Positions 3,037 to 64,000 of a stretch of DNA of 64,000 bases are shown one piece after another. The DNA is taken from positions 62,001-126,000 of IMG/VR virus record IMGVR_UViG_3300024358_000009. One strand, written 5' to 3'. Within the stretch, counting starts at the first letter, position 1, and each line of letters opens with the position of its first letter. A model generated the notes under the pieces. That model was given only the letters and a program-made list of their open reading frames with translations. It searched no databases and was not told the origin of the DNA. Position numbers and translations under genes: made by a program.

Positions 3037-3725
3037 TGTCTGTTTCTATATTATTAATTCCAGACAATAATAAAAAAAATTTAAAAAGATCTTTATATCA
3101 TATATCTAGATTTACTAATGAATTAATAAAGCAAGGTAATAAATTTGAACTGGTTGTGGTTGATGATGGAACATGTGATATAAATGAAGAAGTTGAAGCT
3201 TTTTCTATTACATATTTTTGGAAAACGATTAGACCTCATTATAATTCATTAGAAAAAATTGGAATAAATAAGTTATATAATTTTCATTTGTATTCTGAAT
3301 CTATAGGTTTTGAACATTGTTCATATGAAAAAATAATTAAAATTTCTGCAAGCACAATACCTTTTCAAGATACTTTAAAAAAACTATACGATTCAAGCTT
3401 AATTGATGGATGGAACTTAATAAATGTATATGGTATAGACCAGAGTATAGAAGATAGAATAGATTTATATGGAGTATTCTTTCCAAAAGAAACTATGGAA
3501 TTAAGTTTTTCCAATCCTATACAAACATCTTCATATACAAAATATGAAAGACCAATATTTGGAATTACTAATAAGAAATCGTATTGGTCTAATAATTTTA
3601 ACTACATAGAAAATAGCTATGCTCTTTCCTCTGTCGATTATTTTTTAAATGAAGAGAAAGAAATTAATTTAGATAAGTTTTCTATTTTAAAAAAAGACAT
3701 AGAAGTATTTAGCAATATTATATGA
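3036..3725 (+). CDS. Divergent GT2-like protein
   Basis: MSVSILL start and FELVVVDDGT motif. The second DxD position reads ISASTIP. Start is coupled to the upstream stop (TGATG). Confidence 0.5.
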   Translation: MSVSILLIPDNNKKNLKRSLYHISRFTNELIKQGNKFELVVVDDGTCDINEEVEAFSITYFWKTIRPHYNSLEKIGINKLYNFHLYSESIGFEHCSYEKIIKISASTIPFQDTLKKLYDSSLIDGWNLINVYGIDQSIEDRIDLYGVFFPKETMELSFSNPIQTSSYTKYERPIFGITNKKSYWSNNFNYIENSYALSSVDYFLNEEKEINLDKFSILKKDIEVFSNII

Positions 3726-7746: not shown

Positions 7747-8559
7747 TTACACCATTTTTGAATCTTCAAACCTTTGAATAGCCTCTAAAAGTTCATGTGA
7801 ATACATTTCTTTTGCAAAATGTTCAATTATTTCGCCACAATCTAATCCTAACTCATTCCATCCTATTAAATAATTAACAACTCTGTCAATAAGGTTTAAT
7901 TTATAAGGAACTCCATTTGGGCGACCAAATCTATGTAACCACATTAAAAATGGTAAACATAAGGTTCTACCACCTCTTTGTCTTACTTTTTCTTGAATAT
8001 AACCTTCTTCCGCACCAAAACCCTTAAACTTTCGATTAAAACCTGGCCAAGACGACTTTTTCATGCAAAACAAACCCATGCCTTGCATTGGTATGTCAAA
8101 CGGCTGTCCTGATTGTACTTTAGGATCTGTTCCCCAAACGCCATACATATGACCAGACCAAACTGGATTAAAATGAGTGGCTAAATTGTCCATATCATCA
8201 TAAATAAGTGGACCTTGTAGCAAATCTTTATCTGGCCTGTTTATTGCAATATAGTCTTTTAAATTTCTTATAGCGTTTGGATATAGTAAAATATGCGAAT
8301 CTATACATAAAACATATTCTTTAGTGGCTCGTTCAAAAACAAAATTTTTAGCTTCTGATGGAGTGTGAGCAGCAGACGGTTCATGGTAATACTTTACACG
8401 CATAGAATTGCAAGTTTCTTCAAGTGTTTTACAACCTCTTTCTTCAGTATCTATAATTAAGATTTCACAATCTGATATGTCTTGATACATACGCAGTGCT
8501 TGAGTTGTAAAATAACAACCATCAAAATCTTTATATGTAGGAAGACCGATTGTTAACAT
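7747..8559 (-). CDS. GT-A glycosyltransferase resembling polypeptide O-HexNAc transferases (GT27/GT60-like)
   Basis: LTIGLPTY, ILIID, EYVLCIDSHILL (DxH), and IPMQGMGLFCM...GFGAEE...KVRQRGG...LP...LHRFGR. Likely start at MLTIG (8559), just after the upstream stop. Confidence 0.8.
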   Translation of the reverse strand: MLTIGLPTYKDFDGCYFTTQALRMYQDISDCEILIIDTEERGCKTLEETCNSMRVKYYHEPSAAHTPSEAKNFVFERATKEYVLCIDSHILLYPNAIRNLKDYIAINRPDKDLLQGPLIYDDMDNLATHFNPVWSGHMYGVWGTDPKVQSGQPFDIPMQGMGLFCMKKSSWPGFNRKFKGFGAEEGYIQEKVRQRGGRTLCLPFLMWLHRFGRPNGVPYKLNLIDRVVNYLIGWNELGLDCGEIIEHFAKEMYSHELLEAIQRFEDSKMV

Positions 8560-8560
8560 T

Positions 8561-9718
8561 TTATATAAACTCATCTAAATAAAATTTTATCTCTTCATAA
8601 CCATTTGCTTGATGTTCTACTATGCCATCAAAATCAAATGTCATTGTAACAGCATTATTTAATGACACTATACATTCTGCTGTTCCTGATTGAACTAAAT
8701 TATTAGTTCCACCACAATTGTATGAATCTTCTATTATAAATTTAATAGTTTTTCCGTTATTAGTTATTAACCAAGGATTTCCATTTTGAGTTCCACTATA
8801 TGATACTTGCCAATCTAATGCTATGTTTTCACTAAATCCAAAATTTGCTTCATAATATGCATTTTTATGAAAAAGAGCATCCCGAGTTGTAAAATAAATT
8901 TTTATTCTAAATGTTTGAGAAATTAAATATGGAAAATTCTTATAAAATGTTTTAGATGGAGGACCACAAAAACAACCAAGATTTTTACCTACAGATCCTC
9001 CTATTGCAATAAGAGAACTTGGATTTTCGCAATTAGTTATTCCTCCTAAAACAATTGGGGCTTCATTTCCGTCTGAATTAATCGGAAATAAATTAGAAAT
9101 TTCATTTTTTACTTGTTTAAAATATGGATTTTGTTGATAGCTTCCACCTTTTCCAATTATATCTCCAATTTCTATTATTTTAGTAGAGCTTGAACTTTGA
9201 ACCAATTGATTAAATAATCCAACATCATATTCATATAATTCCAGATGACTTTTGCTTGTTATTCCATTTGGAAATTCTCTATCTGTTCCAATAATTGGTA
9301 TTGAATAGCTATATAGTGAATTATAATGAACAGAACTATCCATAGTATTTATTACTATAACAATTTCATTATTAGAATTTTGTATTTCTCTATATGAATC
9401 ATAAATCCAATCTTCCATATTATTTACATAATTATTTATTTGTACAACTTTTACATTACTTAAAAGATTTAAACTGTAAATAAAGCCTTTAAATAAATCT
9501 ATAGCATTTGGTTGCCATTGAGAATAACTAATACTTCCTGTATTGTCTATTATAATAATTATTTCTAATTTTAAATTTTTTGCTATAAGATTTCTGTTTG
9601 TTGCTACTGTAGTAGATTTATTATATAAATTTAAAAAAAGTAATTTTAAATCACAAAATGTAATTCTTGCTGTAGTTGGACCGCAACAACCACAACCATC
9701 AATTATTTCTATTGACAT
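8561..9718 (-). CDS. vWA-like domain protein with Cys clusters
   Basis: IIIIIDNTGSIS resembles a MIDAS DxSxS variant after a hydrophobic strand. Also GCGCCGP and GCFCGPP motifs. Confidence 0.5.
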   Translation of the reverse strand: MSIEIIDGCGCCGPTTARITFCDLKLLFLNLYNKSTTVATNRNLIAKNLKLEIIIIIDNTGSISYSQWQPNAIDLFKGFIYSLNLLSNVKVVQINNYVNNMEDWIYDSYREIQNSNNEIVIVINTMDSSVHYNSLYSYSIPIIGTDREFPNGITSKSHLELYEYDVGLFNQLVQSSSSTKIIEIGDIIGKGGSYQQNPYFKQVKNEISNLFPINSDGNEAPIVLGGITNCENPSSLIAIGGSVGKNLGCFCGPPSKTFYKNFPYLISQTFRIKIYFTTRDALFHKNAYYEANFGFSENIALDWQVSYSGTQNGNPWLITNNGKTIKFIIEDSYNCGGTNNLVQSGTAECIVSLNNAVTMTFDFDGIVEHQANGYEEIKFYLDEFI

Positions 9719-36776: not shown

Positions 36777-37586
36777 TTAGTTCCCCTTTAAATCGCTTAA
36801 TATAGTTCCTGGAGGTTCATAATTTGCAAAAACATAAAAATATCTAGGTCCAGTGTTTTGATAAGACAATTCATGATCAGCAAACCCAAAATTTTGAACT
36901 CTTGTTTCTGGTAATTGTGCAGTTTCTAAATAACTCCATTTCGGCCCTTTTTCCATTCCGTTAAAAATAGCTGCGTCAAAATTTATTGGGTTTCTTACTT
37001 CTAGGTTTCTTTTGTCAATTGAACCTGTATAACAATTATGTGCACCCAAAGGAATTCCCTCTGGTAGTTCAAACTTTAAATAGTTTACATTTGTTAAATC
37101 GGTCAAACTTTTCCATCTATCAAAAGGAAAACCATTAGTTGAAGCACTAATAAATTTTTCTAAACTTGGATCTCCTAATGTATAATAGTACTGTTTACTT
37201 TTTGGATCTTTTCCTGCGTTACATTCATATAAAAATGATATGTATAAAAAAGGTTTTTCTTCTAAATAATAAAATTTAAAATAAATACTTGTTTTAAATC
37301 CGACTTCCTTAACTAATTCCTCTGGACAACAACCAATAGGATGTCCTGATGAAAAATTTTGATCGTAAATCATAATATCGACATTTGATTTTCCATAATT
37401 TGAATTTTTTATATACTGTTTTGTCTGTGGAAACTCGTAGTAAAATTGATGATTAAAATCTCTTGGGTTAAAATTTAAATTTTTATTTTTTAAAAAAAGC
37501 CAAGATGGACTTTGTGATCTCCAATTGAATCTTGGATCTGTAAAGAAAAATCCAGCTGTTAAATTATAAACTTTGTTGTTTAACAT
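36777..37586 (-). CDS. Hypothetical protein
   Basis: 269-aa ORF coupled to both neighbours. No family recognised. Confidence 0.6.
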   Translation of the reverse strand: MLNNKVYNLTAGFFFTDPRFNWRSQSPSWLFLKNKNLNFNPRDFNHQFYYEFPQTKQYIKNSNYGKSNVDIMIYDQNFSSGHPIGCCPEELVKEVGFKTSIYFKFYYLEEKPFLYISFLYECNAGKDPKSKQYYYTLGDPSLEKFISASTNGFPFDRWKSLTDLTNVNYLKFELPEGIPLGAHNCYTGSIDKRNLEVRNPINFDAAIFNGMEKGPKWSYLETAQLPETRVQNFGFADHELSYQNTGPRYFYVFANYEPPGTILSDLKGN

Positions 37587-40500: not shown

Positions 40501-43500
40501 ATTCATGAACATAAAATTCTGGTTGAATATAACCATATTTTAAAAGCGATCTTCCATAAGGTAATTGTTTAAAAGAACATTCCCACCTAGATATAAAAGC
40601 TTTTTGTTGTTCTTCATTTTGATAAGGAACAATTTCTTTTATATTTTTATCATAAAATACTATACCAACTAAACAACCATGACTTGCATGCCAAGGATCT
40701 CTATTCAATACGACAGAATTAAGATATTGTTTTTGACTTGGATTTCTAATTATTATAGGAACAAATCTTTCATCTTTAAATATAGAGCCTGTTCCTGAAA
40801 GTTGATCGATTATTTGTTTTTGTGAATCATTTAATTGTGGATATGATTTTTTCCAAAAATAAAATGTTGTTCCTCCAGATTGATATTCTTCCTGTGTATC
40901 AAACCAAAGTTGTAATTGCCAAGTTATATAATGAAGACCTATATTTATATTTGATCTAGAAGAAAAACCTCTTAAAATAATACTTGTGTTTATAAATCTT
41001 TTTGTGTTTAAGTTGAAAAGACACTTTCTTGGAATGTTACAACTTTTTAAAAAGTCATAATATGGACCAGTTTCTTCAGGTGGATATTCATTGGTTAATG
41101 GATCTGTTAAAATAGAAATTGGTTTATAAGCAAAATAATATAAAGTTGGATCATTATTAGTAATAAAATCATTAGATGTTAATTTTTCAAATCTTCCATC
41201 TGGCAAATCTGTTACATAAATTCCAGTATAAGGACTAGTACTATATTGTTTATAATAATTTAAAAATAAATTTAATTCAGGACAACAATTATTTGCTGGT
41301 TTAGATAAATTATTTAAATTAAAACAATATTGAAAAGTTGATGTCAATTCTGCTTTAGCTAAATCGCATGGTGTAGGAGGTGCACTTGTAGTAGTGGTTG
41401 TAGTAGTGGTAGTGGTAGTTGTACAGATAGCTAAAGAAGCTGCCTGTAAAGCAGTTTCACATTCTTCCTGAGATGTGTATATTCCACTTCCATCAACTTC
41501 ACAAACACAATCAAAACAATCTAAAGCTTCGTTATAAACAGATTTCCAACTTGGACATGGAGTTGTACTAGTGGTAGTTGTTGTGGTTGTTGTAGTAGTC
41601 GTAGTCGGAGGAGTAATACTACTACATTCAACATGGTGAACATGAGCATTGCCATTAAAGAAACTGGTTATTACAAATTTATCGGTATCGGTGTTTTCAT
41701 TTTTTGGAAAGAATTCTATGTTATGAAATAAATAGTCTTCACCGAGATCATATTCATGCCAATTAAAACTATCAAATGTAAAATATATATATCTTTTATC
41801 AGTTAATGCTATCGCACCTATTCCATTTGAAACTACATCTATAAATTTTACTGGGGCATTAGCATTAATATTATTTATTATTACTGATTGCCACTGAGTA
41901 AAATTATTTGGATATGAAACTTTAAGATTACCATTATTATCTATTGCTAAATAATGCAAAGAATCAAAATCTATTCTTTTGTAAGTGGATTTGAGTGTTA
42001 TGCCTTGGTTTTGAGCTATTATAAATGTATTTGAATTTCCTTTTTTAACATAAACATCATCCGATGAACTTGTTGATAATATAAAAATATCACTATTATT
42101 TGTAATTGGTTCTAAATAAGCATCTCCATTAAATGTACCTTCAAAAATTTTACCACTTCCAAAATAACACTTATATACATTGTTGTTTTTAGTTAAAAAA
42201 TAGTTTTTTGTAACAGAAACTACATATTCTTCAGAAGTTTCAAAAATTAATTGTTCTGGAGGTAAAATACTTGGAGCAATAATCATAGAAGAATCTGTGT
42301 TTAAAACAGCTTCTATATTAAAATTAATATCAATAGGCGTATTAAAACTAGAATTATTTGGTGTGTTTATTAAGTTATAACCTAAATTATCAAAAAGATC
42401 ATATCTAATTTCTGTATCAAATAAATTAATGTCATTTGTTTTATAAAATGTCTCTAAATTTCCAAGTATATAAATAATGGCTGTTTTATTTGTATTATTA
42501 CCAATAGAAGATAAATAACCTTTTTTAATATATGGACTTGGAGAAGTAGCTTTTTCAACTTTTACTGTTTTCCAAGTTCCAAAACACTCTGGAGGTGCTT
42601 GAGTAGTTGTTGTAGTCGTTGTTGTGGTTGTTGTCGTTGTTGTCGTAGTAGTTGTGGTGGTATTTAAACTAGTAGTTGTTGTAGTTGTATTAAAATTATT
42701 TTGTAATACATGCACATCGCAAGAACATGATTCTGTTAAAAATTCAAAATTTGGAATTGACTGAAATTTATTGAAAGTTGTAACAAATTTAGGTTCTATT
42801 ATTGAAGTGTTATTTTTATTAGTTGGACTATTAAAACTTCTATACATAAAAGGAAATTTTTGATCATCAGTATTTCCAAAATAAACCGGAAGAGTTTGAT
42901 AAAGCAAAACAGTTTCTATGCCGGTTTTTAATGGAACAGAAAAATTATTTGAAACAAGAGATATTTTAAAGTTATCTAATCCTAGATCACCAAGTTCTGT
43001 TAAATTAGGTTCAAAAAGTTTTATATATGGTATTTTTATAATATTTAAACATTCAACTGGAGAACCAAAAAAAAGCACATCATTTAACTGATCGGTTAAG
43101 CTTTTTCCGGCTTCGCCAGGTTCATAAAATTCATAACATTGTTTTCGCAAAACAATATACAAACTGTGCCAATCAGCATCAGATGCAACATATTCCAAAT
43201 TACATTTATTATAATCGGTATCCAAAAGTATTTTATAATCTGTAGCGTTGTCATCGCCTTGCTCAAGAATAAATTTAGAAATACTTGGTGCAGTTCCTGA
43301 TGGAAGACCGTTATTTTGTAATAAATATTTAAATGTATAAAATTCAAATGGTGTAGCTACAAAGAAATTTGAAACAAAGGTTGTGTTTCCATTTATAATT
43401 TCGGTAGTACGATTTTCATGAATAAAAATAGAACCTTTAATGTCATATTTATCTTCAAATATTTTTACAAAGTTATAAGTTATAAAACCAGAAGCATTTT

Positions 43501-45529
43501 GTGTTAAAGTTCTGCATTTTGTTTGTGCTTCTTCTATTTCTTCAGTATTGGATTTAAAACCAACAAATGTTCCTGTATTAACTAGTCCTAATGACGCAGA
43601 AGGATTTGATGTAGAAAAATAACCTGTTAAAAATTCATTGTTATTAAATAATTTACCAGATAATACACATTGACCATCCCAAGCACCTTCTACTTGTTCT
43701 TGTGACCATCCAAAAATATCTGTCTGAACACTCTTATTTGCAAAAAAGTTTGGTATAAAAACTGATTTAATTGAGTTGTATAAATTTGGATCGTATTGTG
43801 GAGCGGTTGCGATTATATGCGTTCCATCGGCATATGTATTAGAAGATGTTTTTCTACCACCTGATAAAACATAAAATCTTGAATTAGAAGATACTATATT
43901 ACTGTAATAATCATTTATTTTTGAAGTATTTAAAGTAAATTTTGAATTAAAAGAACTAGGGGCAGCACTATCAGAATATAAATTAGATAAAAATCTATTT
44001 TGTATATATAACTGTCTTTCGTTCTGTGGAAAGATAGTATTTTTTAGATCATATTTATCTAATCGAACAAAGCCTATTGATGGAGGTCCAAAATAATTAT
44101 TTTCTATAATACTAGAAAATGTTAAAATTATACCGTTTCCAAACTTGCCTACAATAATATCAAAATCCCAATTGAAATTTCTATTAGAATTGTCTTTATG
44201 AGGAATGTAATAACTAGATGTTTTAAAGTTATGTCTAGTGTCATAAGTTGAAGCATTGAGATGTAAATTAAATCTATAGTCATTTAATTTTAATACTGCT
44301 GAATTACTTGTATAGTTTAAATCTTCAGATGTTATAAATACCGCAAATTCATTATTTTGTGGTGGATTATTAGGTCTTACAGTTGTTGTTGTAGTGGTTG
44401 TAGTTGTAGTGGTCGTGGTAGTTGTGGTTGTAGCAGTCGTAGTCGTTGGTGCTGTCTTTACATTAATTGGTATATTATGAATAATGTCTTGCAATGAATT
44501 GAATATAGAACCGTTTTGCCTAAGTTTTATAGAAGTTTTTACTGTGTCTAGTAAATAAGATCTTAAAATATATCCTAATGTTAATTTAAATGATGGTATT
44601 GAAGACACGCCATTAGTTACATCTCTAGAACCAAACGAAAATGTTTCAACAAAATCATTTTGGCCATTATCTATTACTTGTATAATTATTCCAGTAACTG
44701 CATTAGAAGCAGACATATTAAAATTATTAGCAAGTACTCCATTTTCATCTAAAAAAGATATATAAATATTATTTGTATTAACAAATGTTTCATATGCTTC
44801 TAAACTTAATTGATCATGTTGTGTGCTTGAATTTGCGATTGTAGCTGGATTAGTCATACTAGCTACAATTTGAGAAGCGACAGAACCTGGTCTTAAAACA
44901 GTAACTGGTGACCAATCTGGATCACTATTAGATATTTGTGCTGCATTATCTAAAGTCAAAGTAAATGTTAAATATACTATAATATTAGCATTATTCGCAA
45001 AAATAGATGGATCTGTTCCTATCCATTCTAATCTTAAAGAATTAGCATCTATAGTATAAGTAGAATTTGTGGATATAGATTTAGAAAATGTTCCACCAGA
45101 AGAATTTTTAATTAAAAAATTATTATTAGAAGAAGTAACTGTTAATGTGCCTACTGCTTTTATTGGTGATAAAGGTAATCCAGAATTTGTAAAAGTTAAT
45201 ACTATATTTTCTGAAATAAGAGATTTTCCAGAAGAATCTAAACTAATAGATGTGGGAATTCCAGCTGTTACACGAAGAGTATCTGGGTATACAGCAGTAG
45301 GACTTAATGTCGTTGTGGTAGTTGTTGTAGTAGTCGGAGCGGAATTAATAGATTTAATAGGAATCCACTGTTGTGAGTTTGGATTCCAAAAAAATGTAGC
45401 ATTGCTTGCTGTATTATACCAAAAAGCAGGTCTTTTTCTTTCAACTATTTTTGGTTCATTGGGCTGTCTATATACTAAAGAATCTCTAGAAGGATTAGAA
45501 ATTCCTGGCAATTCGTTAGGATTAGGCAT
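37586..45529 (-). CDS. Giant mucin-like adhesin/fibre protein (2647 aa) with poly-Thr linkers
   Basis: Six Thr-rich tracts separate globular, Cys-rich and beta-propeller-like segments. Gly-rich stretch near the C-terminus. Lies within the virion operon. Confidence 0.7.
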   Translation of the reverse strand: MPNPNELPGISNPSRDSLVYRQPNEPKIVERKRPAFWYNTASNATFFWNPNSQQWIPIKSINSAPTTTTTTTTTLSPTAVYPDTLRVTAGIPTSISLDSSGKSLISENIVLTFTNSGLPLSPIKAVGTLTVTSSNNNFLIKNSSGGTFSKSISTNSTYTIDANSLRLEWIGTDPSIFANNANIIVYLTFTLTLDNAAQISNSDPDWSPVTVLRPGSVASQIVASMTNPATIANSSTQHDQLSLEAYETFVNTNNIYISFLDENGVLANNFNMSASNAVTGIIIQVIDNGQNDFVETFSFGSRDVTNGVSSIPSFKLTLGYILRSYLLDTVKTSIKLRQNGSIFNSLQDIIHNIPINVKTAPTTTTATTTTTTTTTTTTTTTTTVRPNNPPQNNEFAVFITSEDLNYTSNSAVLKLNDYRFNLHLNASTYDTRHNFKTSSYYIPHKDNSNRNFNWDFDIIVGKFGNGIILTFSSIIENNYFGPPSIGFVRLDKYDLKNTIFPQNERQLYIQNRFLSNLYSDSAAPSSFNSKFTLNTSKINDYYSNIVSSNSRFYVLSGGRKTSSNTYADGTHIIATAPQYDPNLYNSIKSVFIPNFFANKSVQTDIFGWSQEQVEGAWDGQCVLSGKLFNNNEFLTGYFSTSNPSASLGLVNTGTFVGFKSNTEEIEEAQTKCRTLTQNASGFITYNFVKIFEDKYDIKGSIFIHENRTTEIINGNTTFVSNFFVATPFEFYTFKYLLQNNGLPSGTAPSISKFILEQGDDNATDYKILLDTDYNKCNLEYVASDADWHSLYIVLRKQCYEFYEPGEAGKSLTDQLNDVLFFGSPVECLNIIKIPYIKLFEPNLTELGDLGLDNFKISLVSNNFSVPLKTGIETVLLYQTLPVYFGNTDDQKFPFMYRSFNSPTNKNNTSIIEPKFVTTFNKFQSIPNFEFLTESCSCDVHVLQNNFNTTTTTTSLNTTTTTTTTTTTTTTTTTTTTQAPPECFGTWKTVKVEKATSPSPYIKKGYLSSIGNNTNKTAIIYILGNLETFYKTNDINLFDTEIRYDLFDNLGYNLINTPNNSSFNTPIDINFNIEAVLNTDSSMIIAPSILPPEQLIFETSEEYVVSVTKNYFLTKNNNVYKCYFGSGKIFEGTFNGDAYLEPITNNSDIFILSTSSSDDVYVKKGNSNTFIIAQNQGITLKSTYKRIDFDSLHYLAIDNNGNLKVSYPNNFTQWQSVIINNINANAPVKFIDVVSNGIGAIALTDKRYIYFTFDSFNWHEYDLGEDYLFHNIEFFPKNENTDTDKFVITSFFNGNAHVHHVECSSITPPTTTTTTTTTTTTSTTPCPSWKSVYNEALDCFDCVCEVDGSGIYTSQEECETALQAASLAICTTTTTTTTTTTTSAPPTPCDLAKAELTSTFQYCFNLNNLSKPANNCCPELNLFLNYYKQYSTSPYTGIYVTDLPDGRFEKLTSNDFITNNDPTLYYFAYKPISILTDPLTNEYPPEETGPYYDFLKSCNIPRKCLFNLNTKRFINTSIILRGFSSRSNINIGLHYITWQLQLWFDTQEEYQSGGTTFYFWKKSYPQLNDSQKQIIDQLSGTGSIFKDERFVPIIIRNPSQKQYLNSVVLNRDPWHASHGCLVGIVFYDKNIKEIVPYQNEEQQKAFISRWECSFKQLPYGRSLLKYGYIQPEFYVHESTLTRQNSNPIFYVAASYNPKNPLSIYQTLDAYSIGNIYNIRGMLKEIRHIGGTNIEYNNTTRITLEPDCTGLITTTTTTPNTQTTTTKISINRPPLPPVVTTTTTTATTTTTGPGGTTTTVGPSGTALKMPDGITFRNGKIYITVGGYVRKVIENDIGDPVNNSGGPVMSNTVCYWNYSQKEKGRIGRSWLRFTQLKHSVHGTNIHDIRSPDRSDTSYLFNCGDFPAQNNPDFGVVLPSISASAMGLLEAQRNYFALTNVLANSNVFPVPHLDATNCRKPSYPITDSLNIKIDEHIKTGCKTSKYTTPEGYTFSAQTAYFILSPAFTRRGNEEDGYSNFLVVTFNTIGFYNDPYERGFLYGPDPYYRGSVNISGDTGWLPNFVAGAICNPRCEVYYPDPESEVGLHRFKNGTIALIGNHNTLEIGNMLNGTNSAVNFGFGPCLLKGLWLNRNNGSKFIDSAASLVGQACSSYFHGKETDPKKYFSINKPNELYNEGDYVPLVGPFSSSNMSGSLQQAILEKNGPCGENLIGFNGSPSAMAEGQGMVISAAQWGELLTSLSNIAPVTQADIMSHWSANIKNVDPFMLSYGKCTTVSNFNNLTYNLQIDPATGRPYVDEDGNPTGEIVPSQDLANPEGAEDPDDNFNSSALAINPDSPLVKPEPYAVGPGVIGTNSTNPVTGPTRPQPPNPLPTGTNPVNGSCPPGEEVYTFYIRGVYGIITNIVNKCCKSILINTACGIKKICEHAIYGGTPGLLDCLPPGPGPGGFGGGYGYPGGLGGLGGLGGLGLGGGGFGGGGGIAGVPQPGNPAVVVDNLRRGNEPKPPCVQRDYNGQKFATPPYTDTNIDNFGGKLEPCNFCKSNVKNALVNGEVVQQPKEVGFCAQMTIKYKTYIDEDGCLQSIPGNSLDTVNVNVKGEQKQYQVTGEQNISKDICFYSIPGKNLTAEQAYLDWATGEFNGKPNKPPYVAAGRK

Positions 45530-57500: not shown

Positions 57501-58299
57501 ATGTTTGATAATTTAAATAAGATCTAAACTTAACAACAGATTGTTGAGGTGATTGCGTTGTAGTTGTGGTTGTTGTAGTAGGATTTGGATTGATATAGCA
57601 ATCAAGTTTTGCAAATTGATCACCGCTAAATGTAATTAATTCAGTTATTATATATGTTCCACTTATATCTCCAAAACCACCACTTAAAATAATAAAATCA
57701 TTAAATGATAATATATCTCCAACTTGTAAATCATAAGTAGTCCATGTAGAACCATTAAAAAAATTAATTGCCGGACCAACACCAACCATACTAGCTGTCA
57801 AAAGTTGATAAGGGCCACCAGTAAAATAAAATCCGTTATTTGAAGTTATTGAAGCTCCACTAGGGGTATTACTAGCAGAAGAGCTTGAAACATCTATGCT
57901 CCAATTGGCAAAACAATCTCCTGAGTTATCTGGAACAAAATAAAAACTACCACTAGAACCCACTTCAATTCCATTAGCAATAATTGAAATTTGTGATCCA
58001 GCATCAATATATATAGGAAAAGAAAAAGAAAAAACATGAGGAAGCATTGAAGCTGTTTCATTAATATAATCTATAGTTCCATTAGGACCATAGACTCTTA
58101 ATATTAAAGAAGCACCAGTAAATTGAGCAAAAGCTGAGTATTGGGCTAATAAATAACCAGACTCTGATGCATTAAAAGAAAATACAAAATAACCTGGATT
58201 TGGTTGATTGTTTGCCTGATAAACTAAATATGGATCTTGATATGTTCCAGAGCCTGTATATGTAGCATTTATTATAGATTGATCGATTGTAAATGACAC
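51553..58299 (-). CDS. Long tail fibre with collagen tracts and poly-Thr linkers (about 2248 aa)
   Basis: Likely GTG start at 58299 (RBS ggagga, overlapping the upstream TAG). Contains (GNQGFQGDQ)n, two Thr tracts, CBM-like modules and repeated GQ.L.(S/T)(N/D)G.G.LSW fibre motifs. Confidence 0.85.
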   Translation of the reverse strand: MSFTIDQSIINATYTGSGTYQDPYLVYQANNQPNPGYFVFSFNASESGYLLAQYSAFAQFTGASLILRVYGPNGTIDYINETASMLPHVFSFSFPIYIDAGSQISIIANGIEVGSSGSFYFVPDNSGDCFANWSIDVSSSSASNTPSGASITSNNGFYFTGGPYQLLTASMVGVGPAINFFNGSTWTTYDLQVGDILSFNDFIILSGGFGDISGTYIITELITFSGDQFAKLDCYINPNPTTTTTTTTQSPQQSVVKFRSYLNYQTSFSSIGGPSTDWPYASSDSFSMVLSPSGPGPIHSPLEPPITPSSNVTIEILSYDPETGDAYPPFVTLNISGSGLVYKGSFNYPISDSTYTNFSQPPEPYVYPINLSFNESFVVPTGSTFYFDFYSSSWISNVNFNVSITAYNQSTTTTTTTTTTTTTTTTTTTVAPTHTTQDPYIAIKPKRSYIAGSIPNSGDMQINEFAINVVDKKGFVLDSNGIIHTIFEPNNAGNQGPQGFQGIQGFQGFQGRQGFQGNQGNQGFQGFQGRQGFQGNQGNQGFQGNQGNQGFQGDQGNQGSQGDQGNQGFQGDQGNQGSQGDQGNQGFQGDQGNQGFQGDQGNQGFQGDQGNQGFQGDQGSQPFNYLGAYNNGVTYSVGQAVTYDGSLYVMSNYIGAAGYIPPAYPGNWDLVLSKGDQGNQGFQGYQGEQGFQGDQGFQGYQGNQGYQGSQPFNYVGTYNSGIVYNAGDAVSYNGQLWVMMITIGSAGNAPEEYFWDMIVDRGSQGYQGTQGLQGNQGLQGLQGIQGSQGSQGNDGNFGGVTVEYKFDGLNTSISDPGDNYIRFNNSDISSATHLLIDDNPNNANIDLSIYLNTIDDSTSTIKGHVKISKKFSPNVFAIYAINSLSDSSPSYFDIDVSYLSGSGSFSDQDEVLLTFARTGDKGDTGNQGFQGNQGLQGNQGSQGFQGDQGDQGNQGFQGDQGNQGFQGDQGNQGFQGDQGNQGFQGDQGNQGFQGYQGNQGFQGDQGNQGDQGNQGFQGDQGFQGFQGDQGNQGFQGDQGNQGFQGDQGDQGFQGDQGFQGFQGDQGNQGFQGDQGNQGFQGDPATVTPGGSSGELQYNNAGSFDGTAEFTYSSGQISIAPYGSSAGNTSELRFLELVANGSNYVGFKAPDSISANTIWTLPPSDGIGGQFLSTDGFGELEFKEVLNFRTKVKNSTGSTLSPKQVVYVNGASGSTPTVALAQANTETDSSKTYALVAETINHNADGFVVAQGLLENVNTSSFSAGNTLWLSPTTAGGLTTTKPTAPDHAVFIGTVVNVSVNQGSILVNIQNGYELEELHNVSINSGTLADNDIIQYNSSSKVWENVAGSTSSISEGSNLYYTDTRARSALSAGTGISYNNTTGVITNSSPDQTVVLTAGTGISTSGTYPNFTITNSSPDQTVTLTAGTGISVTGTYPSFTITNSSPSSGGTVTSVGVSVPTGMKVTNSPITSSGTIAIAMDTGYALPTSASQTNWDSAYSERRQWDGGSTNLVAATGRTSLGGTTVGSNLFTLTNPSAVTFLKVNADNTVTAESASTFRTSIGAGTGNGTVTSIATNSPITGGTITSTGTIGINSSSTNTASYVVQRDASGNFSAGTITASLSGNATSATNIAGGGAGQLPYNTGSGATSFLAAGTSGQILKSNGTSAPSWMNTSSITSVGTLSGLTITETVTTDNTLTINAVASQTGNLVILKDSTTATLFSIGPTGATTINDTTASTTTGTGSLIVAGGAGIAGQATIGTLVAAGLSYPTADGTSGQVLSTNGAGTLSWTSAAGASAAGSTGDIQYNDGSAGFTATSSFSYGSSAYDQLALYSNNAAFGVFGIFGASGQTYPLLEFRDYLGTTVYSYFDATGNLYLNAQTDIRFADADSSNYVAMQSPATIATNYTLTLPTTAGTNNYVLKTDGSGNLSWTNGITNLLGGGAGQIPYNTGSGATSFLAAGTSGQVLRSNGTAAPSWEVQGLFSGGRLTLTSGTPVTTSDVTSASNVYYTPYNGDKISLYNTSSSSWVNCSFTEKTLALSGLSSGTLYDVFGYLSSGTLALDPPVAWGTTSSRSSAISFQNGVYVKTTDLSRRYLGTFRATAATTTEDSAANRYLWNNHNRILRHGFVTAFSLNFAWSGASREWNGGASVTRLNFINGLNESPVLITGVLAVGTGAAGSTAQAGFGLDSTTSFFGTAYTDSQISGYVVRTISTHGYTSSIGYHYVTPIQNASSTANWYGVNCGIVLWC
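55057..55530. repeat. Imperfect 9/27-nt tandem repeat encoding GNQGFQGDQ
   Basis: Recurring accttggaaaccctgattaccttggtc-type units. A second array lies at about 56440-56820. Confidence 0.9.
56440..56820. repeat. Second collagen-coding tandem array of the 2250-aa fibre
   Basis: Same 9/27-nt units (accttggttaccctgatcaccttggaa). Confidence 0.9.
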
Positions 58300-60359
58300 T
58301 ACCAAGTTCCTCCATCTACATCAACCCAAACAAGTTGATTAGAACTATTGTATGTTAATATTTGTCCGGTAGATCCACCAGATGGAAAACTTGCTTCACT
58401 GCCTTGAAATCCTTGATCTCCTTGATAACCCTGATCACCTTGATAACCCTGTTCTCCTTGATAACCCTGATAACCTTGTTCTCCTTGGTATCCCTGAAAC
58501 CCTTGTGAGCCAGCAGTAAGAATTATATCTTCTTTTGCCCAATGATTTATAGAATTTGGATCATATCTATATACCCATAAAATTAATGGATCTGTGTCAT
58601 CTGGAGCAAATGCCCATTGATAAACTTCTGGAGGACCACTCGGATAAGTTGTTAAAAGATGAGTTTCGTTTTCAAAAGTTCCTATAAATTCTGAATAATG
58701 ACCATCAATACCTTGATAACCTTGAGAGCCTTGATAACCTTGTGTTCCTTGAAATCCTTGATTACCTTGAAGACCTTGATTACCCTGTAAACCTTGATTT
58801 CCCTGCAATCCTTGATTACCTTGAAGTCCTTGGTTGCCTTGATTACCTTGATGACCTTGAAAACCAATAGAGCCAACAAGACCTTGTCTACCTTGACTGC
58901 CTTGAAGACCTTGATATCCTTGTAAGCCCTGATAACCTTGTGGTCCACGAATCGGGCCAACATTATCCCAATAAACAGGGCTAGTGCCTGTGTATACAAC
59001 TCCGTCTCCAATAGCAGCAGTTCCATTGTCTGGATTAGGACAAGATTGACTAGCAGATCCTTGTGCTGTAGATGTAAGTAACCACATATCTCCAATAGTG
59101 GCAGTTCCAGTTTGATTATTGAAAATATTTTGCCAAGTATCAGAACCTTTTATTTCAACTCCAGCACCTGTTTGTCCTTGATTGCCTTGACTTCCTTGAT
59201 AACCTTGTAAACCTTGACTACCTTGATTACCTTGCAAACCTTGATTGCCCTGTAATCCTTGATTACCTTGAAAACCTTGATTACCCTGAAAGCCTTGACT
59301 ACCTTGAAGTCCTTGATTTCCCTGAAGTCCTTGATTACCTTGAAGACCTTGATTTCCTTGAAATCCTTGTAAACCTTGATTACCTTGAAGACCTTGAAAA
59401 CCTTGACGACCCTGAAGACCTTGTAAACCTTGATTTCCTTGTAAGCCTTGATGACCTTGTGTTCCTTGATTACCAATATCACCAACAAGGAGTAAAGATA
59501 TTGTAATTTGTTGGTTGTTACTTAGTGAAAACCCAGAAGATGTATTAACATGTTCTATGTTAAACGAAGCATAAGTACTATTAACTGTATTTGAAGATGT
59601 TATTTTAAAAATAGAAAATTTAGAATTATCATTAATTGGTTGAATAACTATATATGATTTTACAAAATTAGTAGAATCATCTAATAAAGAATAAATAGAA
59701 CTAATATTATTAGAATTTATATCTAGACCACTAAATAAGGCTATTGTCGCAAGAGAAAAATTAGAGTTATTTAATCTAAACTGTTCTGGAGTTGGAACAC
59801 CAGATGTTAATGTACTAAATAAATAATTTATATGTAATGAACTAACGCCTTGATAGCCTTGAGATCCAACTTGTCCAGTTATATTAACATCCCAAACATT
59901 ACTACTTCCAGTGCCAACTACATAATCCACATCAACAACTATGCTCGATGTGTTTGGATCAGTAGATAATATAAGACCTTCTAAAAAATGAGATGTATTA
60001 TTATTATCTACTATCCTTACTCTAATACCAGCCCTAATAGCATCTATAGATAATACAGAAAGAGTTTTTAGTCCAATAGTTTTGGATATAGTTGATAAAG
60101 ATGATGTAGCACCGAAAGAAATGCCTATTGAACCTTGATCACCTTGAAAACCAATAAAACCTTGGTTTCCTTGATTACCTTGATTACCTTGATTTCCTTG
60201 ATTGCCTTGTGAACCCTGAATACCTTGAAGACCTTGAGAACCAGTAACAACTCCTGGAATAAAGTTAGTGCCATCAAATTTAATGACATTTCCAGAAGAA
60301 GGAACACCTACAAAATCGTCTTGATCTTGTATTCTTGATGGTCTTTTGCTGAAATGCAT
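58299..60359 (-). CDS. Collagen-like fibre protein (686 aa, GLQ/GNQ-rich)
   Basis: Four (G-X-Q)n tracts separated by globular knobs. Confidence 0.85.
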   Translation of the reverse strand: MHFSKRPSRIQDQDDFVGVPSSGNVIKFDGTNFIPGVVTGSQGLQGIQGSQGNQGNQGNQGNQGNQGFIGFQGDQGSIGISFGATSSLSTISKTIGLKTLSVLSIDAIRAGIRVRIVDNNNTSHFLEGLILSTDPNTSSIVVDVDYVVGTGSSNVWDVNITGQVGSQGYQGVSSLHINYLFSTLTSGVPTPEQFRLNNSNFSLATIALFSGLDINSNNISSIYSLLDDSTNFVKSYIVIQPINDNSKFSIFKITSSNTVNSTYASFNIEHVNTSSGFSLSNNQQITISLLLVGDIGNQGTQGHQGLQGNQGLQGLQGRQGFQGLQGNQGLQGFQGNQGLQGNQGLQGNQGLQGSQGFQGNQGFQGNQGLQGNQGLQGNQGSQGLQGYQGSQGNQGQTGAGVEIKGSDTWQNIFNNQTGTATIGDMWLLTSTAQGSASQSCPNPDNGTAAIGDGVVYTGTSPVYWDNVGPIRGPQGYQGLQGYQGLQGSQGRQGLVGSIGFQGHQGNQGNQGLQGNQGLQGNQGLQGNQGLQGNQGFQGTQGYQGSQGYQGIDGHYSEFIGTFENETHLLTTYPSGPPEVYQWAFAPDDTDPLILWVYRYDPNSINHWAKEDIILTAGSQGFQGYQGEQGYQGYQGEQGYQGDQGYQGDQGFQGSEASFPSGGSTGQILTYNSSNQLVWVDVDGGTW

Positions 60360-60362
60360 TTT

Positions 60363-60926
60363 TTATTCCAAAAATTTTGGTGTTATTCCATTTATACAAC
60401 CGTCTATATAGAATACACCACAAAAAGCAGCTATTTGTTTTGCTGTAGATTCAGTATTTTGCATTAAGTCTGAGTAATTAACTATTAATTTTCTGCCTGA
60501 AAAATTATTAAAAATATTTTCAGCTGTATTATACTGTTTTTCTATAGTATCTGGAAAAGCTTGATCGCCCATAAGCATAGAATATTCAATATTGGCTTTG
60601 TTTATATTTCTTTTTGCCCATATTATACTAGTTTGTATTGAAGTTTCTGATATGAACTTATTCCATGCATCTTTTTTTAGAAATTCAAATGATCTTGTTC
60701 CAATTTTTCCTTGTTGAACTGTTTTTAGTTTTAAATCCCAGTAATTTTTTGGATTTGTATAAATATATCTTGTGTACTTATCATTGAAACTTCCTGTTGG
60801 ATACCAGTCTGGATTATCATTTGCATTCTCTCTTTCTCCCATATTTATGCCAAGAGAGTTTAATATTTTGGCTATAACGCTAGTTCCAGATCTATAAGAA
60901 CCAATTATAATTGTGCAATCTTTCAT
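60363..60926 (-). CDS. Sulfotransferase family protein
   Basis: N-terminal IIIGSYRSGTSVIAKILNSLG matches the PAPS 5'-phosphosulfate-binding loop. C-terminal LIVNYSDLMQNTESTAKQIAAFCG is typical of Sulfotransfer_3. Confidence 0.8.
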   Translation of the reverse strand: MKDCTIIIGSYRSGTSVIAKILNSLGINMGERENANDNPDWYPTGSFNDKYTRYIYTNPKNYWDLKLKTVQQGKIGTRSFEFLKKDAWNKFISETSIQTSIIWAKRNINKANIEYSMLMGDQAFPDTIEKQYNTAENIFNNFSGRKLIVNYSDLMQNTESTAKQIAAFCGVFYIDGCINGITPKFLE

Positions 60927-61858
60927 TCTAAATCCTCGTTTCGTTCTTTGAAATAATTCTCAATTGATTTTAAAAAGTCTTTATTGTCGCCTACATATCT
61001 ATACAAACCTTGATCGTTAACTAAGTCTTTAGAAACATTAAAATTAGTATCTTTTAAAATTTTTTGTCTTTCTATATATTTTCTATTAACTTTATCGCCA
61101 TGATTTAAATGAAAAATAGGTTGATCTATATAATCAAAATTTATTTCTACATTAGATTTGTTATTTAGTATATCTTTTAAAAAACAAATAACGCTATCTT
61201 GTTTTCTTTTTATAAAAGGTATTTCTATGTCTAGGCTTAAATTAAGCCATTTAAAAAGATTAATAGTGTCTCCGCCACCTATAATGCATTTATCATATAA
61301 TGGATTATTCAAAAGTGTTTCTTTCTTTGTAATCCATGCCATTCCTGGGTTACCAAAAGTATAATCACTTGAATTAAAAGTTTTAATGTAATTTTCTTTT
61401 CCGTCTGATTTAATTATTTGCGATGAAACACTCGGAGTGCTATGACTATAAAAGCCATGATTTCTATAATGATTTTTTGGTAAATAATAAACATCAGAAA
61501 ATGGTTGTATAAATAAATTTTCTTTTTGATCCAATTTATTTTTTGCTTCTTGCACCCAATTATCATCACTAAATAAAACATCACCATCAATAAAAGCTAT
61601 ATACTTAATAGAATCTGGCATTTTTTCGGCTAGATAATTTATAACTCTTTCCTTTTGCCAAAGTAATTGATCTGACTTTAAAGCAAAAAGACCTTGCATA
61701 TTTAAGTCAAAACTATTATTTGTAGAAATTTCTATAGGAACAATTACACATTCATATTTAAGCATATGATTATAACAAACATTAAAATTTCTAAATAAAG
61801 ATATTCTTTTAAAATGATTCCAATAATACATTATTATTGCAGTATCTAAATTTTTCAT
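60923..61858 (-). CDS. GT-A glycosyltransferase-like protein (WQKER type)
   Basis: LLWQKERVIN, YIAFIDGDVLF (intact DxD), IIGGGD and IFHLNHG. Confidence 0.7.
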   Translation of the reverse strand: MKNLDTAIIMYYWNHFKRISLFRNFNVCYNHMLKYECVIVPIEISTNNSFDLNMQGLFALKSDQLLWQKERVINYLAEKMPDSIKYIAFIDGDVLFSDDNWVQEAKNKLDQKENLFIQPFSDVYYLPKNHYRNHGFYSHSTPSVSSQIIKSDGKENYIKTFNSSDYTFGNPGMAWITKKETLLNNPLYDKCIIGGGDTINLFKWLNLSLDIEIPFIKRKQDSVICFLKDILNNKSNVEINFDYIDQPIFHLNHGDKVNRKYIERQKILKDTNFNVSKDLVNDQGLYRYVGDNKDFLKSIENYFKERNEDLE

Positions 61859-62859
61859 GCTTTTACCTTAATTTCTTGTGAATAAGGAATAAGTTGCATT
61901 TGATTTAATTCAGCTTCTTTTGAAGCTATGGATTGACCAAAAAATACTGTGTTTGGAAAATAAGCTAAATATTTTGTAAACATAAGTTTATCTATATCAT
62001 CGTATGATGAATAAACAAAACAATAAGATTCATCTTCTGGATTAAATTTTTCTGGATCTACAAACTCAACTCTTTTTTCTAATCCAAATCTTTCTAACCA
62101 AATTTTTGTGCCAATAAAATTTATTTTAGTTTTAATTGGAAAAGCTATAATTTTACAAGCCGATTGTGCCAAGACAATAAGTTCTGCTGGAGATGAACCT
62201 ACATAAACAACTTTTTTTTGATCAGCTAATTGATAAAGTTTTAAATAATCATCGGCTATAAAAGATTGATCTATTCCGTCTGGAAGAATTAAAGGAAAAT
62301 CAAGTTCATCAAAATCAATTTTTTTATTATCAAAAAGTAAATTTAACTTAGGCCAAAAACAAACTAGGCTATAATAACGCATAAAAGAATTTATGCTTTC
62401 TGTTATACTATTTTTTACTTCAAAATTTTTATATAGATCTTTTATGTATCTAGATGAAAATAAAAATGGACCAAATGTATTTTTTTCTAAAAAATTTGTA
62501 ATGTTATAGTCAGGGCTTCTAGATTGAAAAATTGGTCCTACATAAAGTTTTAAAATTGCTACATCTATTTGATATCTAATTAATGGTTTCCATGTAGACA
62601 GATTATTATAAAAAAATTTAGAAAGTTTTTGTTTTCCGTCTAAAAATAAAAAATATTCATAAGAGTCTAAAGATGAAGCTTCATATAAGAAACTTTCAAA
62701 CAAATCTCTTCTGTTTTTTCCATTTATATATACTACTTTTCCGCCAAAGTCAGTTTCTTCTAAATTGCTTTTGTTTCTTGCGTTGTCAAAAACTACCAAA
62801 TTGCTAAATGGTTTTGTTCCAACTTTTATTTCTGATACTCTAGGACTGCATATTTCCAT
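61855..62859 (-). CDS. Divergent GT-like/Rossmann (methyltransferase-like) fusion
   Basis: Likely start MEICSPR at 62859 (RBS aggagg). YEYFLFLDG recalls GT-A, and KKVVYVGS recalls a degenerate SAM-binding motif I. Confidence 0.4.
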   Translation of the reverse strand: MEICSPRVSEIKVGTKPFSNLVVFDNARNKSNLEETDFGGKVVYINGKNRRDLFESFLYEASSLDSYEYFLFLDGKQKLSKFFYNNLSTWKPLIRYQIDVAILKLYVGPIFQSRSPDYNITNFLEKNTFGPFLFSSRYIKDLYKNFEVKNSITESINSFMRYYSLVCFWPKLNLLFDNKKIDFDELDFPLILPDGIDQSFIADDYLKLYQLADQKKVVYVGSSPAELIVLAQSACKIIAFPIKTKINFIGTKIWLERFGLEKRVEFVDPEKFNPEDESYCFVYSSYDDIDKLMFTKYLAYFPNTVFFGQSIASKEAELNQMQLIPYSQEIKVKA

Positions 62860-62907
62860 AGTATATCCTCCTACTAATATATTATATAAAAAATCCATCA
62901 ATGCAAC

Positions 62908-62938
62908 AAAAAAGGGCAGAGCTTTCGCTCCACCCTTT
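62908..62938 (-). terminator. Intrinsic terminator downstream of the major capsid gene
   Basis: Minus strand aaagggtggagc-GAAA-gctctgcccttt followed by tttg: a 12-bp stem with GNRA tetraloop and U-tract. Confidence 0.85.
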
Positions 62939-62963
62939 ATTGATTTTTATATTGGAAGCTTTA

Positions 62964-63953
62964 TTAGAAAGCACCCAAAAGAACACGACGATTATCGAGA
63001 ACTGCAAAGCCATGTTCGCCGAAACCGTACATGCCCATTCTACGCTGACGATGGAAAGTAGGATCTTCAAAGATCTCAATTTCCTGACGAACAGGCATTA
63101 CAAAGCTGTCACGCTTCTCAAGGTCAAGACCAACAACCAACTCGCTCTTGCCAGACAAAGATCCAGACAAGGTAGAGGTATAGTACAGCTGGTATTCCTG
63201 ACCAACGCCAAGTTCATCGATCTCATGGAGATTTACGCCAAAGATCTGTGCCAAACCATTTTCTGGAGATACAAAGATCTCACGGCGGGTAAAGTCGTCA
63301 ACCTCATCAATATCCCAAGTGCGAATGTCTTCCATCGCCTCTGGAGATACATAAAGGTCAGTCAACTTACCACGATTAATCGAGGTGCTGTTACCACCAG
63401 CATTTCTACGCATTACGGTCTTCATCAAGGCAATAAGCCTCTTGCTGAAGTATCCAGAGGTAGCAACGCTGTCAGTTACAAGCAAGTTGCGACCCTTACC
63501 AGCAGCAATGATAACATGCCAGCCATCATTGTTATTCTTGCGGGTAAAAGAAGCTTCGAGAACTTGCATTGCACGACCTACGATATCCCAACGAGCATCA
63601 CGAAGATACTTGAGGGAGAAGTCGATGGAAGCACCAACTTCATAAGTCTGAACAGTCAAATAATCGCCTTCTACATGGCGTTCAGGAATACGACCCTGTG
63701 AAGGAATAGTATAAGCGATGAAATCCTTCTCAGAACCAGGAGCCAAGAAATCCAATGGGAATTCTACGGAAGTACCTGGTTGGAAAACAACCTGTTCAAA
63801 GATGTTTCCAAGAATATCGCCCTTCAAAACGCCCTGACGCAAAGGAAGAGTAAGAGCCTTTGCAAGTTCTTTCTGAGCAGCTACAGCAACTTCATAATTG
63901 TTGCTACCAGCCTGTTCAGCAAGTTTTACCATTTCTGGAGTTGGAGTCTTCAT
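62964..63953 (-). CDS. Major capsid protein (HK97-fold type)
   Basis: 329 aa with strong RBS gagaggag, high-expression codon bias and its own terminator. Motifs YEVGASIDFSLKYLRDARWDIVGRAMQVLEASF and RMGMYGFGEHGFAVLDNRRVLLG fit a capsid P-domain. Confidence 0.85.
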   Translation of the reverse strand: MKTPTPEMVKLAEQAGSNNYEVAVAAQKELAKALTLPLRQGVLKGDILGNIFEQVVFQPGTSVEFPLDFLAPGSEKDFIAYTIPSQGRIPERHVEGDYLTVQTYEVGASIDFSLKYLRDARWDIVGRAMQVLEASFTRKNNNDGWHVIIAAGKGRNLLVTDSVATSGYFSKRLIALMKTVMRRNAGGNSTSINRGKLTDLYVSPEAMEDIRTWDIDEVDDFTRREIFVSPENGLAQIFGVNLHEIDELGVGQEYQLYYTSTLSGSLSGKSELVVGLDLEKRDSFVMPVRQEIEIFEDPTFHRQRRMGMYGFGEHGFAVLDNRRVLLGAF

Positions 63954-63975
63954 AATTCTATTATCTCCTCTCTAA

Positions 63976-64000
63976 TTATACGATTGGAAGGTCAATGAAT
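63976..64000 (-). CDS. 3' end of the gene upstream of MCP (partial, possibly head decoration)
   Basis: Reads ...FIDLPIV* ending 23 nt before the MCP start. Confidence 0.45.

Follow-up and report, generated by a model that had tools for sequence, protein, structure and literature searches.

The 64,000-nucleotide stretch analysed here (the window) covers bases 62001–126000 of the 206,326-bp virus record IMGVR_UViG_3300024358_000009, which CheckV rates as complete. Between the gene for the major capsid protein and two genes for collagen-like fibres, it carries three contiguous open reading frames (ORF1, ORF2 and ORF3, together the cassette) whose predicted products are a fusion of glycosyltransferase-like and methyltransferase-like domains, a glycosyltransferase and a short sulfotransferase (Table 1). 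The source is described as a large (jumbo), uncultured, river-borne phage with a G+C content of ~33%, and matching DNA was seen in many river metagenome runs as well as in 6 river metatranscriptome runs. Among GenBank phages, nothing matched the DNA of the region or the capsid protein sequence, and no annotated relative exists, whereas at least 106 contigs in IMG/VR carry a related capsid gene (50–100% identity).

An earlier note on this DNA had placed three enzyme genes between the capsid terminator and the fibre genes, and this arrangement holds: all three lie on the minus strand and abut one another. The capsid-gene hairpin is the sole terminator-like site within 58000–64000. Downstream of it, ORF1 starts with the ATG at 62859, preceded by a ribosome-binding site (taggagga), and stops at 61855; ORF1 and ORF2, and likewise ORF2 and ORF3, are joined by an ATGA start/stop overlap, and the 686-aa fibre gene, which lacks its own Shine-Dalgarno sequence, begins after a gap of only 3 bases beyond ORF3. 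The G+C content at third codon positions (GC3) is 12–17% in the cassette, as in the fibre genes, which lends no support to a recent foreign origin of the cassette; the capsid gene, with a GC3 of 40%, stands apart from all neighbouring genes (12–17%). Because the cassette ORFs have same-length homologues at 49–97% identity with invariant motif positions, and a ratio of nonsynonymous to synonymous substitution rates (dN/dS) below 1, they are real genes rather than chance reading frames.

Table 1 Features of the capsid–cassette–fibre region and of the far end of the minus-strand block (window coordinates).
Feature	Coordinates	Strand	Basis
Gene for the major capsid protein (329 aa), next upstream of the cassette	62964..63953	-	PHROG major head protein, weak (E = 1.5e-5, 7e-5)
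Intrinsic terminator of the capsid gene	62903..62938	-	12-bp stem 62938–62911, then T run
ORF1, 334 aa, GT-A-like and class-I methyltransferase-like fusion	61855..62859	-	Fold level
ORF2, 311 aa, GT-A glycosyltransferase	60923..61858	-	Confident model, invariant DxD
ORF3, 187 aa, short sulfotransferase	60363..60926	-	Pfam Sulfotransfer_3, motif, structural neighbours
First collagen-like fibre gene, 686 aa	58299..60359	-	Pfam Collagen (E = 2.9e-43); PHROG tail fibre (E = 1e-71)
Giant second fibre gene, collagen-like, 2250 aa	51553..58305	-	PHROG tail fibre (E = 7e-95)
GT2 glycosyltransferase gene close to the distal end of the minus-strand block	7747..8574	-	Pfam Glycos_transf_2 (E = 8.1e-8; 32.8 bits vs cut-off 23.3)

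The best-defined enzyme of the cassette is ORF2, which its predicted structure confidently identifies as a GT-A glycosyltransferase. The model, built from 40 homologues, has a predicted local distance difference test score (pLDDT) of 93.2 and a predicted template modelling score (pTM) of 0.92, and its Foldseek/VIA matches are to GT-A enzymes only (Z 12–14, spanning residues 1–250/300), among them the Leptospira glycosyltransferase 6p61, K4CP, B4GALNT1, SpsA and GalNAc-T2. The earlier note had called this protein a DxD-containing glycosyltransferase, as the model bears out: the motif, D91-G-D93 (bases 61588–61580), follows strand 86–91 (beta-4) and is invariant in the 40 sequences. Also invariant in these sequences are LWQKE..N, GGGD (194–197), HLxHG (250–254; H250, H253 and G254), R259 and R264, and H250, H253 and G254 could be the source of a third ligand. 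By sequence, the protein scores 18.0 bits against Pfam Glycos_transf_2 (PF00535), under the cut-off of 23.3; just 3 of the 40 family members reach E ≤ 0.01, and neither Pfam nor NCBIfam holds a model for the family. Its relatives occupy at least 406 bacterial loci in many phyla, often in tandem arrays. In the bacterial loci L112–L191, L084 and L086, such arrays hold up to 6 matching ORF pieces, some of which are split ORFs, implying fewer paralogs, and an unannotated protein of 430–506 aa is a repeated neighbour. One bacterial relative has a Methyltransf_24 gene immediately upstream. Acquisition of glycosyltransferase and sulfotransferase as one bacterial unit was considered and is unsupported, since only 1 of 80 bacterial ORF2-family loci lies near an ORF3-family gene and none of the 80 has an ORF1 relative.

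For ORF3, the Pfam match, the motif content and the predicted structure together support assignment as a sulfotransferase. Its score against Sulfotransfer_3 (PF13469) is 31.5 bits with a cut-off of 27 (E = 2.7e-7), the aligned part being residues 126–171 only (46 residues), and 52 of the 62 members of the family alignment match the same model. The GSYRSGTS sequence at residues 9–16 (bases 60902–60879), corresponding to the 5'-phosphosulfate-binding (5'-PSB) loop, is invariant in 7 close alleles, and its G9, R12, G14, T15 and S16 are kept across the 62 family members. Other conserved positions of the family are D49, G76, K/R78, R106 and a serine eight residues past R106; the 3'-phosphate-binding (3'-PB) region runs from R106 to E114 (bases 60611–60585), with Arg106 invariant. 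The ESM Atlas model has a pTM of 0.81, and all 10 structural neighbours listed are clusters containing sulfotransferases (template modelling score by query, 0.71–0.82). Many near neighbours by features are viral clusters of 187–216 aa, and an exhaustive profile search recovered 226 representative relatives at E ≤ 0.001, mainly of 180–230 aa. Searched against the Protein Data Bank (PDB), the narrow ORF3 profile matched no sulfotransferase; such matches appear only with the broader family profile, which found 2zq5 and 2z6v (deposited as uncharacterised proteins; we take them to be Stf-type mycobacterial sulfotransferases), SULT1A, the CurM sulfotransferase and TPST1/2. Among these solved structures, only TPST1/2 align over the full family profile (positions 4–185, E about 1e-6).

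The two-domain ORF1 is known at the level of fold. Its AlphaFold model is of moderate quality (pLDDT 75.5) and comprises an N-terminal domain (residues ~14–192, bases 62820–62284) with a predicted GT-A fold, matching POMGNT1 (Z 12.0), COLGALT1 (Z 11.7) and GnT-I (Z 11.0), and a C-terminal domain (residues ~188–334, bases 62298–61858) with a predicted class-I methyltransferase fold, close to the sugar O-methyltransferase MeT1 (Z 12.7) and also to COMT and CbiT. Neighbours in the AlphaFold database and the ESM Atlas are fusions of GT2 with Methyltransf_24 or FkbM, with language-model scores of 0.87–0.90 for GT2 plus Methyltransf_24. Its homologues, 6 in all, every one falls within this phage lineage. 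Profile searches, which the earlier note had proposed as a check for Sulfotransfer_3 and GT-A, divide the cassette: ORF3 clears its Pfam cut-off, ORF2 stays below that of GT2, and ORF1 has no match in Pfam, PHROG or NCBIfam.

None of the three enzymes contains a hydrophobic segment (maximum KD19 0.9–1.4), and they should therefore be soluble. ORF3 is the only sulfotransferase in the phage genome. Glycosyltransferases are generally abundant in the genome. The earlier note had seen the glycosyltransferase gene at 7747 as bracketing, together with the cassette, the whole morphogenesis operon; the gene is a true GT2 member, but the bracketing is not special, as the 206-kb genome has seven GT2-like places, of which 3 exceed the Pfam cut-off. 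Two of these 3 lie outside the window (G000:C1 18210–18611 and 168092–168520), as do four weaker places.

Short sulfotransferases of the ORF3 family recur in other phages. A locus search with a narrower alignment yielded only 11 loci, too few for an enrichment test, and the nine loci considered for gene context are likewise too few for statistics. In L088, the family member is flanked by genes for a LamG protein and a fibre-repeat protein, and a GT1 gene is close by; in L090, it follows a virion structural protein; and in L093/L094, it is accompanied by genes for a methyltransferase, a DegT aminotransferase and a further P-loop protein, beside structural genes. An unrelated phage (L099:4571–10981) encodes, in order, a portal, a scaffold-like protein, a P22-type capsid, an ORF3-family sulfotransferase, an NTP-transferase and a Sulfotransfer_1-like gene, so that the arrangement of a capsid gene followed by a sulfotransferase gene recurs; a further Sulfotransfer_1-like gene lies upstream in the same locus (3130–3939). 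In L092 (7225–8612), a phage gene for adenosine 5'-phosphosulfate (APS) kinase (PF01583, E = 4e-38) stands directly upstream of the ORF3-family sulfotransferase, and this phage, judged by its genes, appears to supply its own 3'-phosphoadenosine 5'-phosphosulfate (PAPS); next after the sulfotransferase come a conserved protein of 191 aa, which L090 has as well, and a protein of 1853 aa. These gene neighbourhoods lend support to true PAPS use by the family and to its link with virion genes.

Within the lineage of the phage, the cassette is narrowly distributed. It was found only in relatives whose capsid protein is at least 93% identical (L002–L022). In the group with 72–80% identical capsids, only one ORF, of 83 aa and Cys-rich, occupies the slot between capsid and fibre genes (L023:4713–4964, and also L032, L039 and others; its DUF6171 match is weak, E = 1.2e-4, below the cut-off), and the fibre gene begins about 390 bases past the capsid gene. 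In L067 and L072 (capsid 63–64% identical), the slot contains a collagen-like protein, a protein of unknown function, a TPR-FkbM methyltransferase and a GT25-like protein; specifically, L067:11776–15441 and L072:12200–15808 encode, between fibre-like genes, the unknown protein of 325–346 aa, the TPR+FkbM methyltransferase of 630 aa (E = 3e-15) and the GT25-like protein of 251–261 aa (E = 0.002, below the cut-off). Since different lineages fill it with different sets, the capsid-to-fibre slot is a variable cargo site, repeatedly occupied by glycan-tailoring enzymes. The synteny among related phages, proposed as a check in the earlier note, extends to the closest relatives but not to the sister clades.

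The rate of change within the slot also sets the cassette apart from the capsid gene. Compared with the L008 allele, whose capsid protein is 97% identical, ORF1, ORF2 and ORF3 retain only 49, 58 and 55% identity; the value is 57% for the fibre body and 88% for the fibre N-terminus. Nucleotide identity to L008 is 75–91% (about 83% overall) across the capsid gene and the 10 kb before it, falls to 62–68% exactly at the capsid/cassette boundary and is 66–74% through the fibre. The dN/dS of the cassette is 0.32–0.43, about tenfold that of the capsid gene (0.04), whereas the synonymous rate (dS) is 0.86–1.28 in the cassette and 0.56 in the capsid gene, a 1.5- to 2.3-fold rise. A pure module swap as the cause of the identity drop was softened on these grounds, and relaxed or diversifying protein evolution explains most of the drop. 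The cassette is thus constrained yet fast-evolving, with a fibre-like tempo.

Depth in RNA libraries changes abruptly at the same boundary. In three metatranscriptome assemblies, contigs covering the capsid gene have a depth of 760–2770 and those covering the cassette and fibre genes, which share one common low depth, of 8–45; the drop at the capsid terminator is 25- to 300-fold, whereas the DNA run is flat at 88–117. The high-depth contigs end immediately before the hairpin, at 62941/62943, suggestive of a highly efficient capsid terminator or a processed 3' end. In run X17, a contig (61677–62858, depth 11) ends in adapter letters one base from the ORF1 ATG, a weak hint that a transcript 5' end or a processing site may coincide with the start codon.

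The fibres offer several candidate acceptor positions, namely poly-Thr tracts and the Ser, Thr and Tyr residues within their G-X-Q repeats. The 2250-aa fibre has poly-Thr tracts of 8 and 19 residues, and a 2647-aa protein elsewhere in the window (37586–45529) has nine such tracts of 5–20 residues; by their composition, the mucin-like poly-Thr linkers of these two proteins would be natural sites of O-glycosylation. In the 686-aa fibre, whose G-X-Q repeats contain no Lys, the terminal repeats place Tyr beside Asp or Glu, and Tyr makes up 4% of the collagen residues; in comparison with relatives, its N-terminal 40 aa are 88% conserved and its middle 57%. Hydroxylysine-type collagen glycosylation, as in animals and Mimivirus, was ruled out, because the repeats are G-X-Q with 0–0.3% Lys and virtually no Pro; the similarity of ORF1 to COLGALT1 reflects the generic GT-A fold. 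The poly-Thr and collagen content of the fibres was also dropped as a correlate of the cassette, since relatives without the cassette share both features. At 58300–59318 of the window, all four runs, including the DNA run, show the contig going back 1019 letters, with 1479 letters between, most likely because of assembly ambiguity or length variation in the collagen-coding repeats of the 686-aa fibre gene.

The best explanation of the cassette, which we consider plausible, if not quite probable, is cytoplasmic tailoring of virion glycans, most likely those of the fibres, with methylation and sulfation. The enzymes would be made together with the fibre proteins and would decorate the fibres, perhaps along with further virion proteins, prior to or in the course of assembly. 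ORF2, as a metal-dependent GT-A enzyme, would glycosylate the acceptor with a nucleotide sugar as donor; ORF1 would then extend the glycan through its GT-A-like domain, cap it by O-methylation through its COMT/MeT1-like domain, or both; and ORF3 would use host-made PAPS to sulfate a sugar hydroxyl or possibly a tyrosine, the outcome being charged, capped glycans on collagen-like, Thr-rich fibres. This reading, and with it the sulfated glycan coat of the virion proposed in the earlier note, is favoured by the tight coupling of the cassette to the fibre gene, its fibre-like tempo, the solubility of the enzymes and the recurrence of the ORF3 family beside capsid or fibre genes, and further by the native codon usage, the shared low RNA-library depth, the variable tailoring slot, the possible acceptor sites and the viral precedents. 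A bolder version, namely that phage fibres or the capsid bear sulfated and O-methylated glycans or sulfotyrosine, put on in the cytoplasm by phage enzymes, is possible but doubtful; it would make this the first sulfated phage virion, and the ~190-aa sulfotransferases encoded beside capsid or fibre genes, and once beside an APS kinase gene, in many uncultured phages would then form a general, undescribed virion-sulfation system tuning adsorption or surface charge.

Several observations weigh against virion tailoring. Gene order, folds, motifs, evolutionary behaviour and the transcript boundary are shown, whereas the acceptor, the sequence of the steps and a catalytically competent ORF1 and ORF3 are inferred. 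In ORF1, the canonical DxD is absent, the alleles reading LDG, LEK, LDN and VEN after strand 69–72 (only [DE]-x-x); motif I of the methyltransferase domain is Y-[VIL]-G-S-S, not GxGxG; and no conserved acid follows beta-2 (strand 236–239). Because of this single-acid DxD position, the altered motif I and the missing acid, the activity of either domain is uncertain, and the earlier description of ORF1 as a glycosyltransferase/methyltransferase-like fusion is right for both modelled folds, the DxD and S-adenosylmethionine (SAM)-binding motifs being incomplete. The earlier label of PAPS-type sulfotransferase for ORF3 likewise stands on its loop, Pfam match and structural neighbours, but ORF3 and 6 close alleles have an invariant Glu114 where at least 90% of the family has the 3'-PB serine, so that of the Arg-plus-Ser pair only the arginine is present; an alternative alignment could shift the serine to S116, but S116 is not conserved. 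The 206-kb phage genome contains no APS kinase, for which reason phage-made PAPS was rejected and sulfation would depend on PAPS from the host. About 6 of the nine ORF3-family loci adjoin structural genes, a proportion that is only suggestive. Cellular relatives of ORF2 are found among genes for envelope glycans; in L084, for instance, the neighbours are GT2 genes and an ABC-2 exporter. The sister clades with 72–80% identical capsids lack the cassette and have equally collagen-like, poly-Thr-rich fibres, for which the cassette is therefore dispensable. Lastly, the RNA-library depths are assembler depths with no silent control stretch, and the low depth of the cassette could for that reason be DNA carry-over.

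Remodelling of host envelope glycans (lipopolysaccharide, capsule or glycoprotein receptors) late in infection, on lipid-linked or cytoplasmic intermediates, is a serious alternative, if an unlikely one. It could mask the fibre receptor and so spare progeny phage from being wasted on infected cells and debris, or it could block superinfection. The many cellular relatives of ORF2, often in tandem and near GT2, ABC-2 exporter or Methyltransf_24 genes, would fit such a role, as would the accessory nature of a cassette absent from sister clades, and parallel divergence of cassette and fibre would be just as expected if the specificity of the enzymes must fit the receptor glycan that the fibre binds. 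However, the cassette proteins have neither a membrane segment nor a signal peptide, no flippase or GtrA/B-type partners are present, and receptor-modifying enzymes are typical of temperate phages, in which they are expressed from the prophage. Envelope remodelling also leaves unexplained both the coupling to the fibre gene and the recurrence of the sulfotransferase family by capsid genes in other phages.

Two further explanations concern the enzymes themselves. That ORF3 acts independently of both glycosyltransferase-like proteins, as a TPST/RaxST-type protein tyrosine O-sulfotransferase on Tyr-rich, acid-flanked G-Y-Q fibre repeats, we regard as very unlikely, although TPST1/2 are unique among solved structures in aligning with the whole family profile, the family loop G-x-P-R-S-G-T-S is similar to the 5'-PSB motif of TPST, and the 686-aa fibre supplies Tyr residues next to acids. 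The best-scoring PDB matches are 2zq5, 2z6v and small-molecule SULTs, neither fold nor motifs specify the acceptor, and both the operon shared with two sugar-handling enzymes and the NTP-transferase and DegT genes near relatives point to sugars. It is improbable, too, that some of the proteins have lost enzymatic function, the ORF1 domains being degenerate and ORF3 unable to bind PAPS, and serve as chaperones of fibre assembly or adaptors, or that their substrates are DNA or small molecules with no relation to the virion. The incomplete motifs and modest model of ORF1, the Glu114 of the ORF3 clade, the relatively high dN/dS and the many further glycosyltransferase-like genes scattered in non-structural regions of the phage would be compatible with such roles. 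Conversely, ORF2 retains all catalytic residues that are invariant in its family; the PSB loop, D49, R78 and R106 of ORF3 are invariant across alleles just 53–69% identical; the relative beside an APS kinase points to true PAPS use in the family; and DNA-modifying glycosyltransferases are normally found with replication genes, not after a capsid gene.

Viral precedents exist for most elements of virion tailoring by the cassette. In the chlorovirus PBCV-1, A064R, composed of two glycosyltransferase domains and a methyltransferase domain, builds and methylates the capsid protein glycan together with A061L, and gene variation alters the surface, giving antigenic classes (PMC9614988). ORF1 is likewise a soluble, virus-encoded, multidomain protein with predicted GT-A and class-I methyltransferase domains; PBCV-1 produces its enzymes to modify a structural protein of its own, as proposed for the cassette, and its antigenic classes have a counterpart in the hyper-divergent cassette alleles. 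By contrast, ORF1 has no detectable sequence homology to A064R, two domains rather than three and no canonical DxD, and the cassette serves a phage of bacteria, includes a sulfotransferase and has an acceptor proposed from context. Among giant viruses, Mimivirus L230 glycosylates viral collagen-like proteins, and the 12-gene glyco-cluster of Moumouvirus australiensis includes two sulfate-metabolism genes, from which viral glycan sulfation has been suggested on the basis of gene content (PMC9614988). There, as here, viral collagen-like structural proteins co-occur with virus-encoded glyco-enzymes; L230, however, acts via hydroxylysine, a chemistry inapplicable to G-X-Q repeats with virtually no Lys or Pro. 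For mycobacteriophages of the Che8/Corndog/Myrna type, glycosylation of the C-termini of capsid and tail-tube proteins has been reported (Freeman et al. 2023, as cited in PMC12619734). As far as that citing account goes, these are also tailed phages whose own glycosyltransferase genes put glycans on virion proteins, but the enzyme families differ, and the neighbours of the cassette are collagen-like fibres rather than capsid and tail-tube targets. ORF3 shares with Sulfotransfer_3, TPST and Stf-type enzymes the P-loop-like 5'-PSB motif, the 3'-PB arginine and the overall fold; it differs from them in the glutamate that replaces the 3'-PB serine in its clade, and from solved sulfotransferases (276–414 aa) in its length of 187 aa, a minimal core typical of a mostly viral family of 180–230 aa. 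We know of no sulfotransferase reported for mycobacteriophage virion glycosylation, and a full-text literature search found neither a functional study of a phage sulfotransferase nor a described sulfation of phage particles.

Virus-encoded glycosylation of virions is established for chloroviruses and mimiviruses and has been reported for a few mycobacteriophages. The three cassette proteins open three enzyme groups to assay: a large bacterial GT-A family without a Pfam model, a minimal and mostly viral sulfotransferase family, and an orphan GT-A/methyltransferase fusion. The fast tempo of the cassette and the swapping of slot contents in sister lineages suggest that it is part of a host-range module. 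Should the fibres of abundant freshwater jumbo phages prove to be glyco-sulfated, this would add a new chemical layer to phage–host recognition, the candidate effects being an altered surface charge, imitation of sulfated polysaccharides and shielding against proteases.

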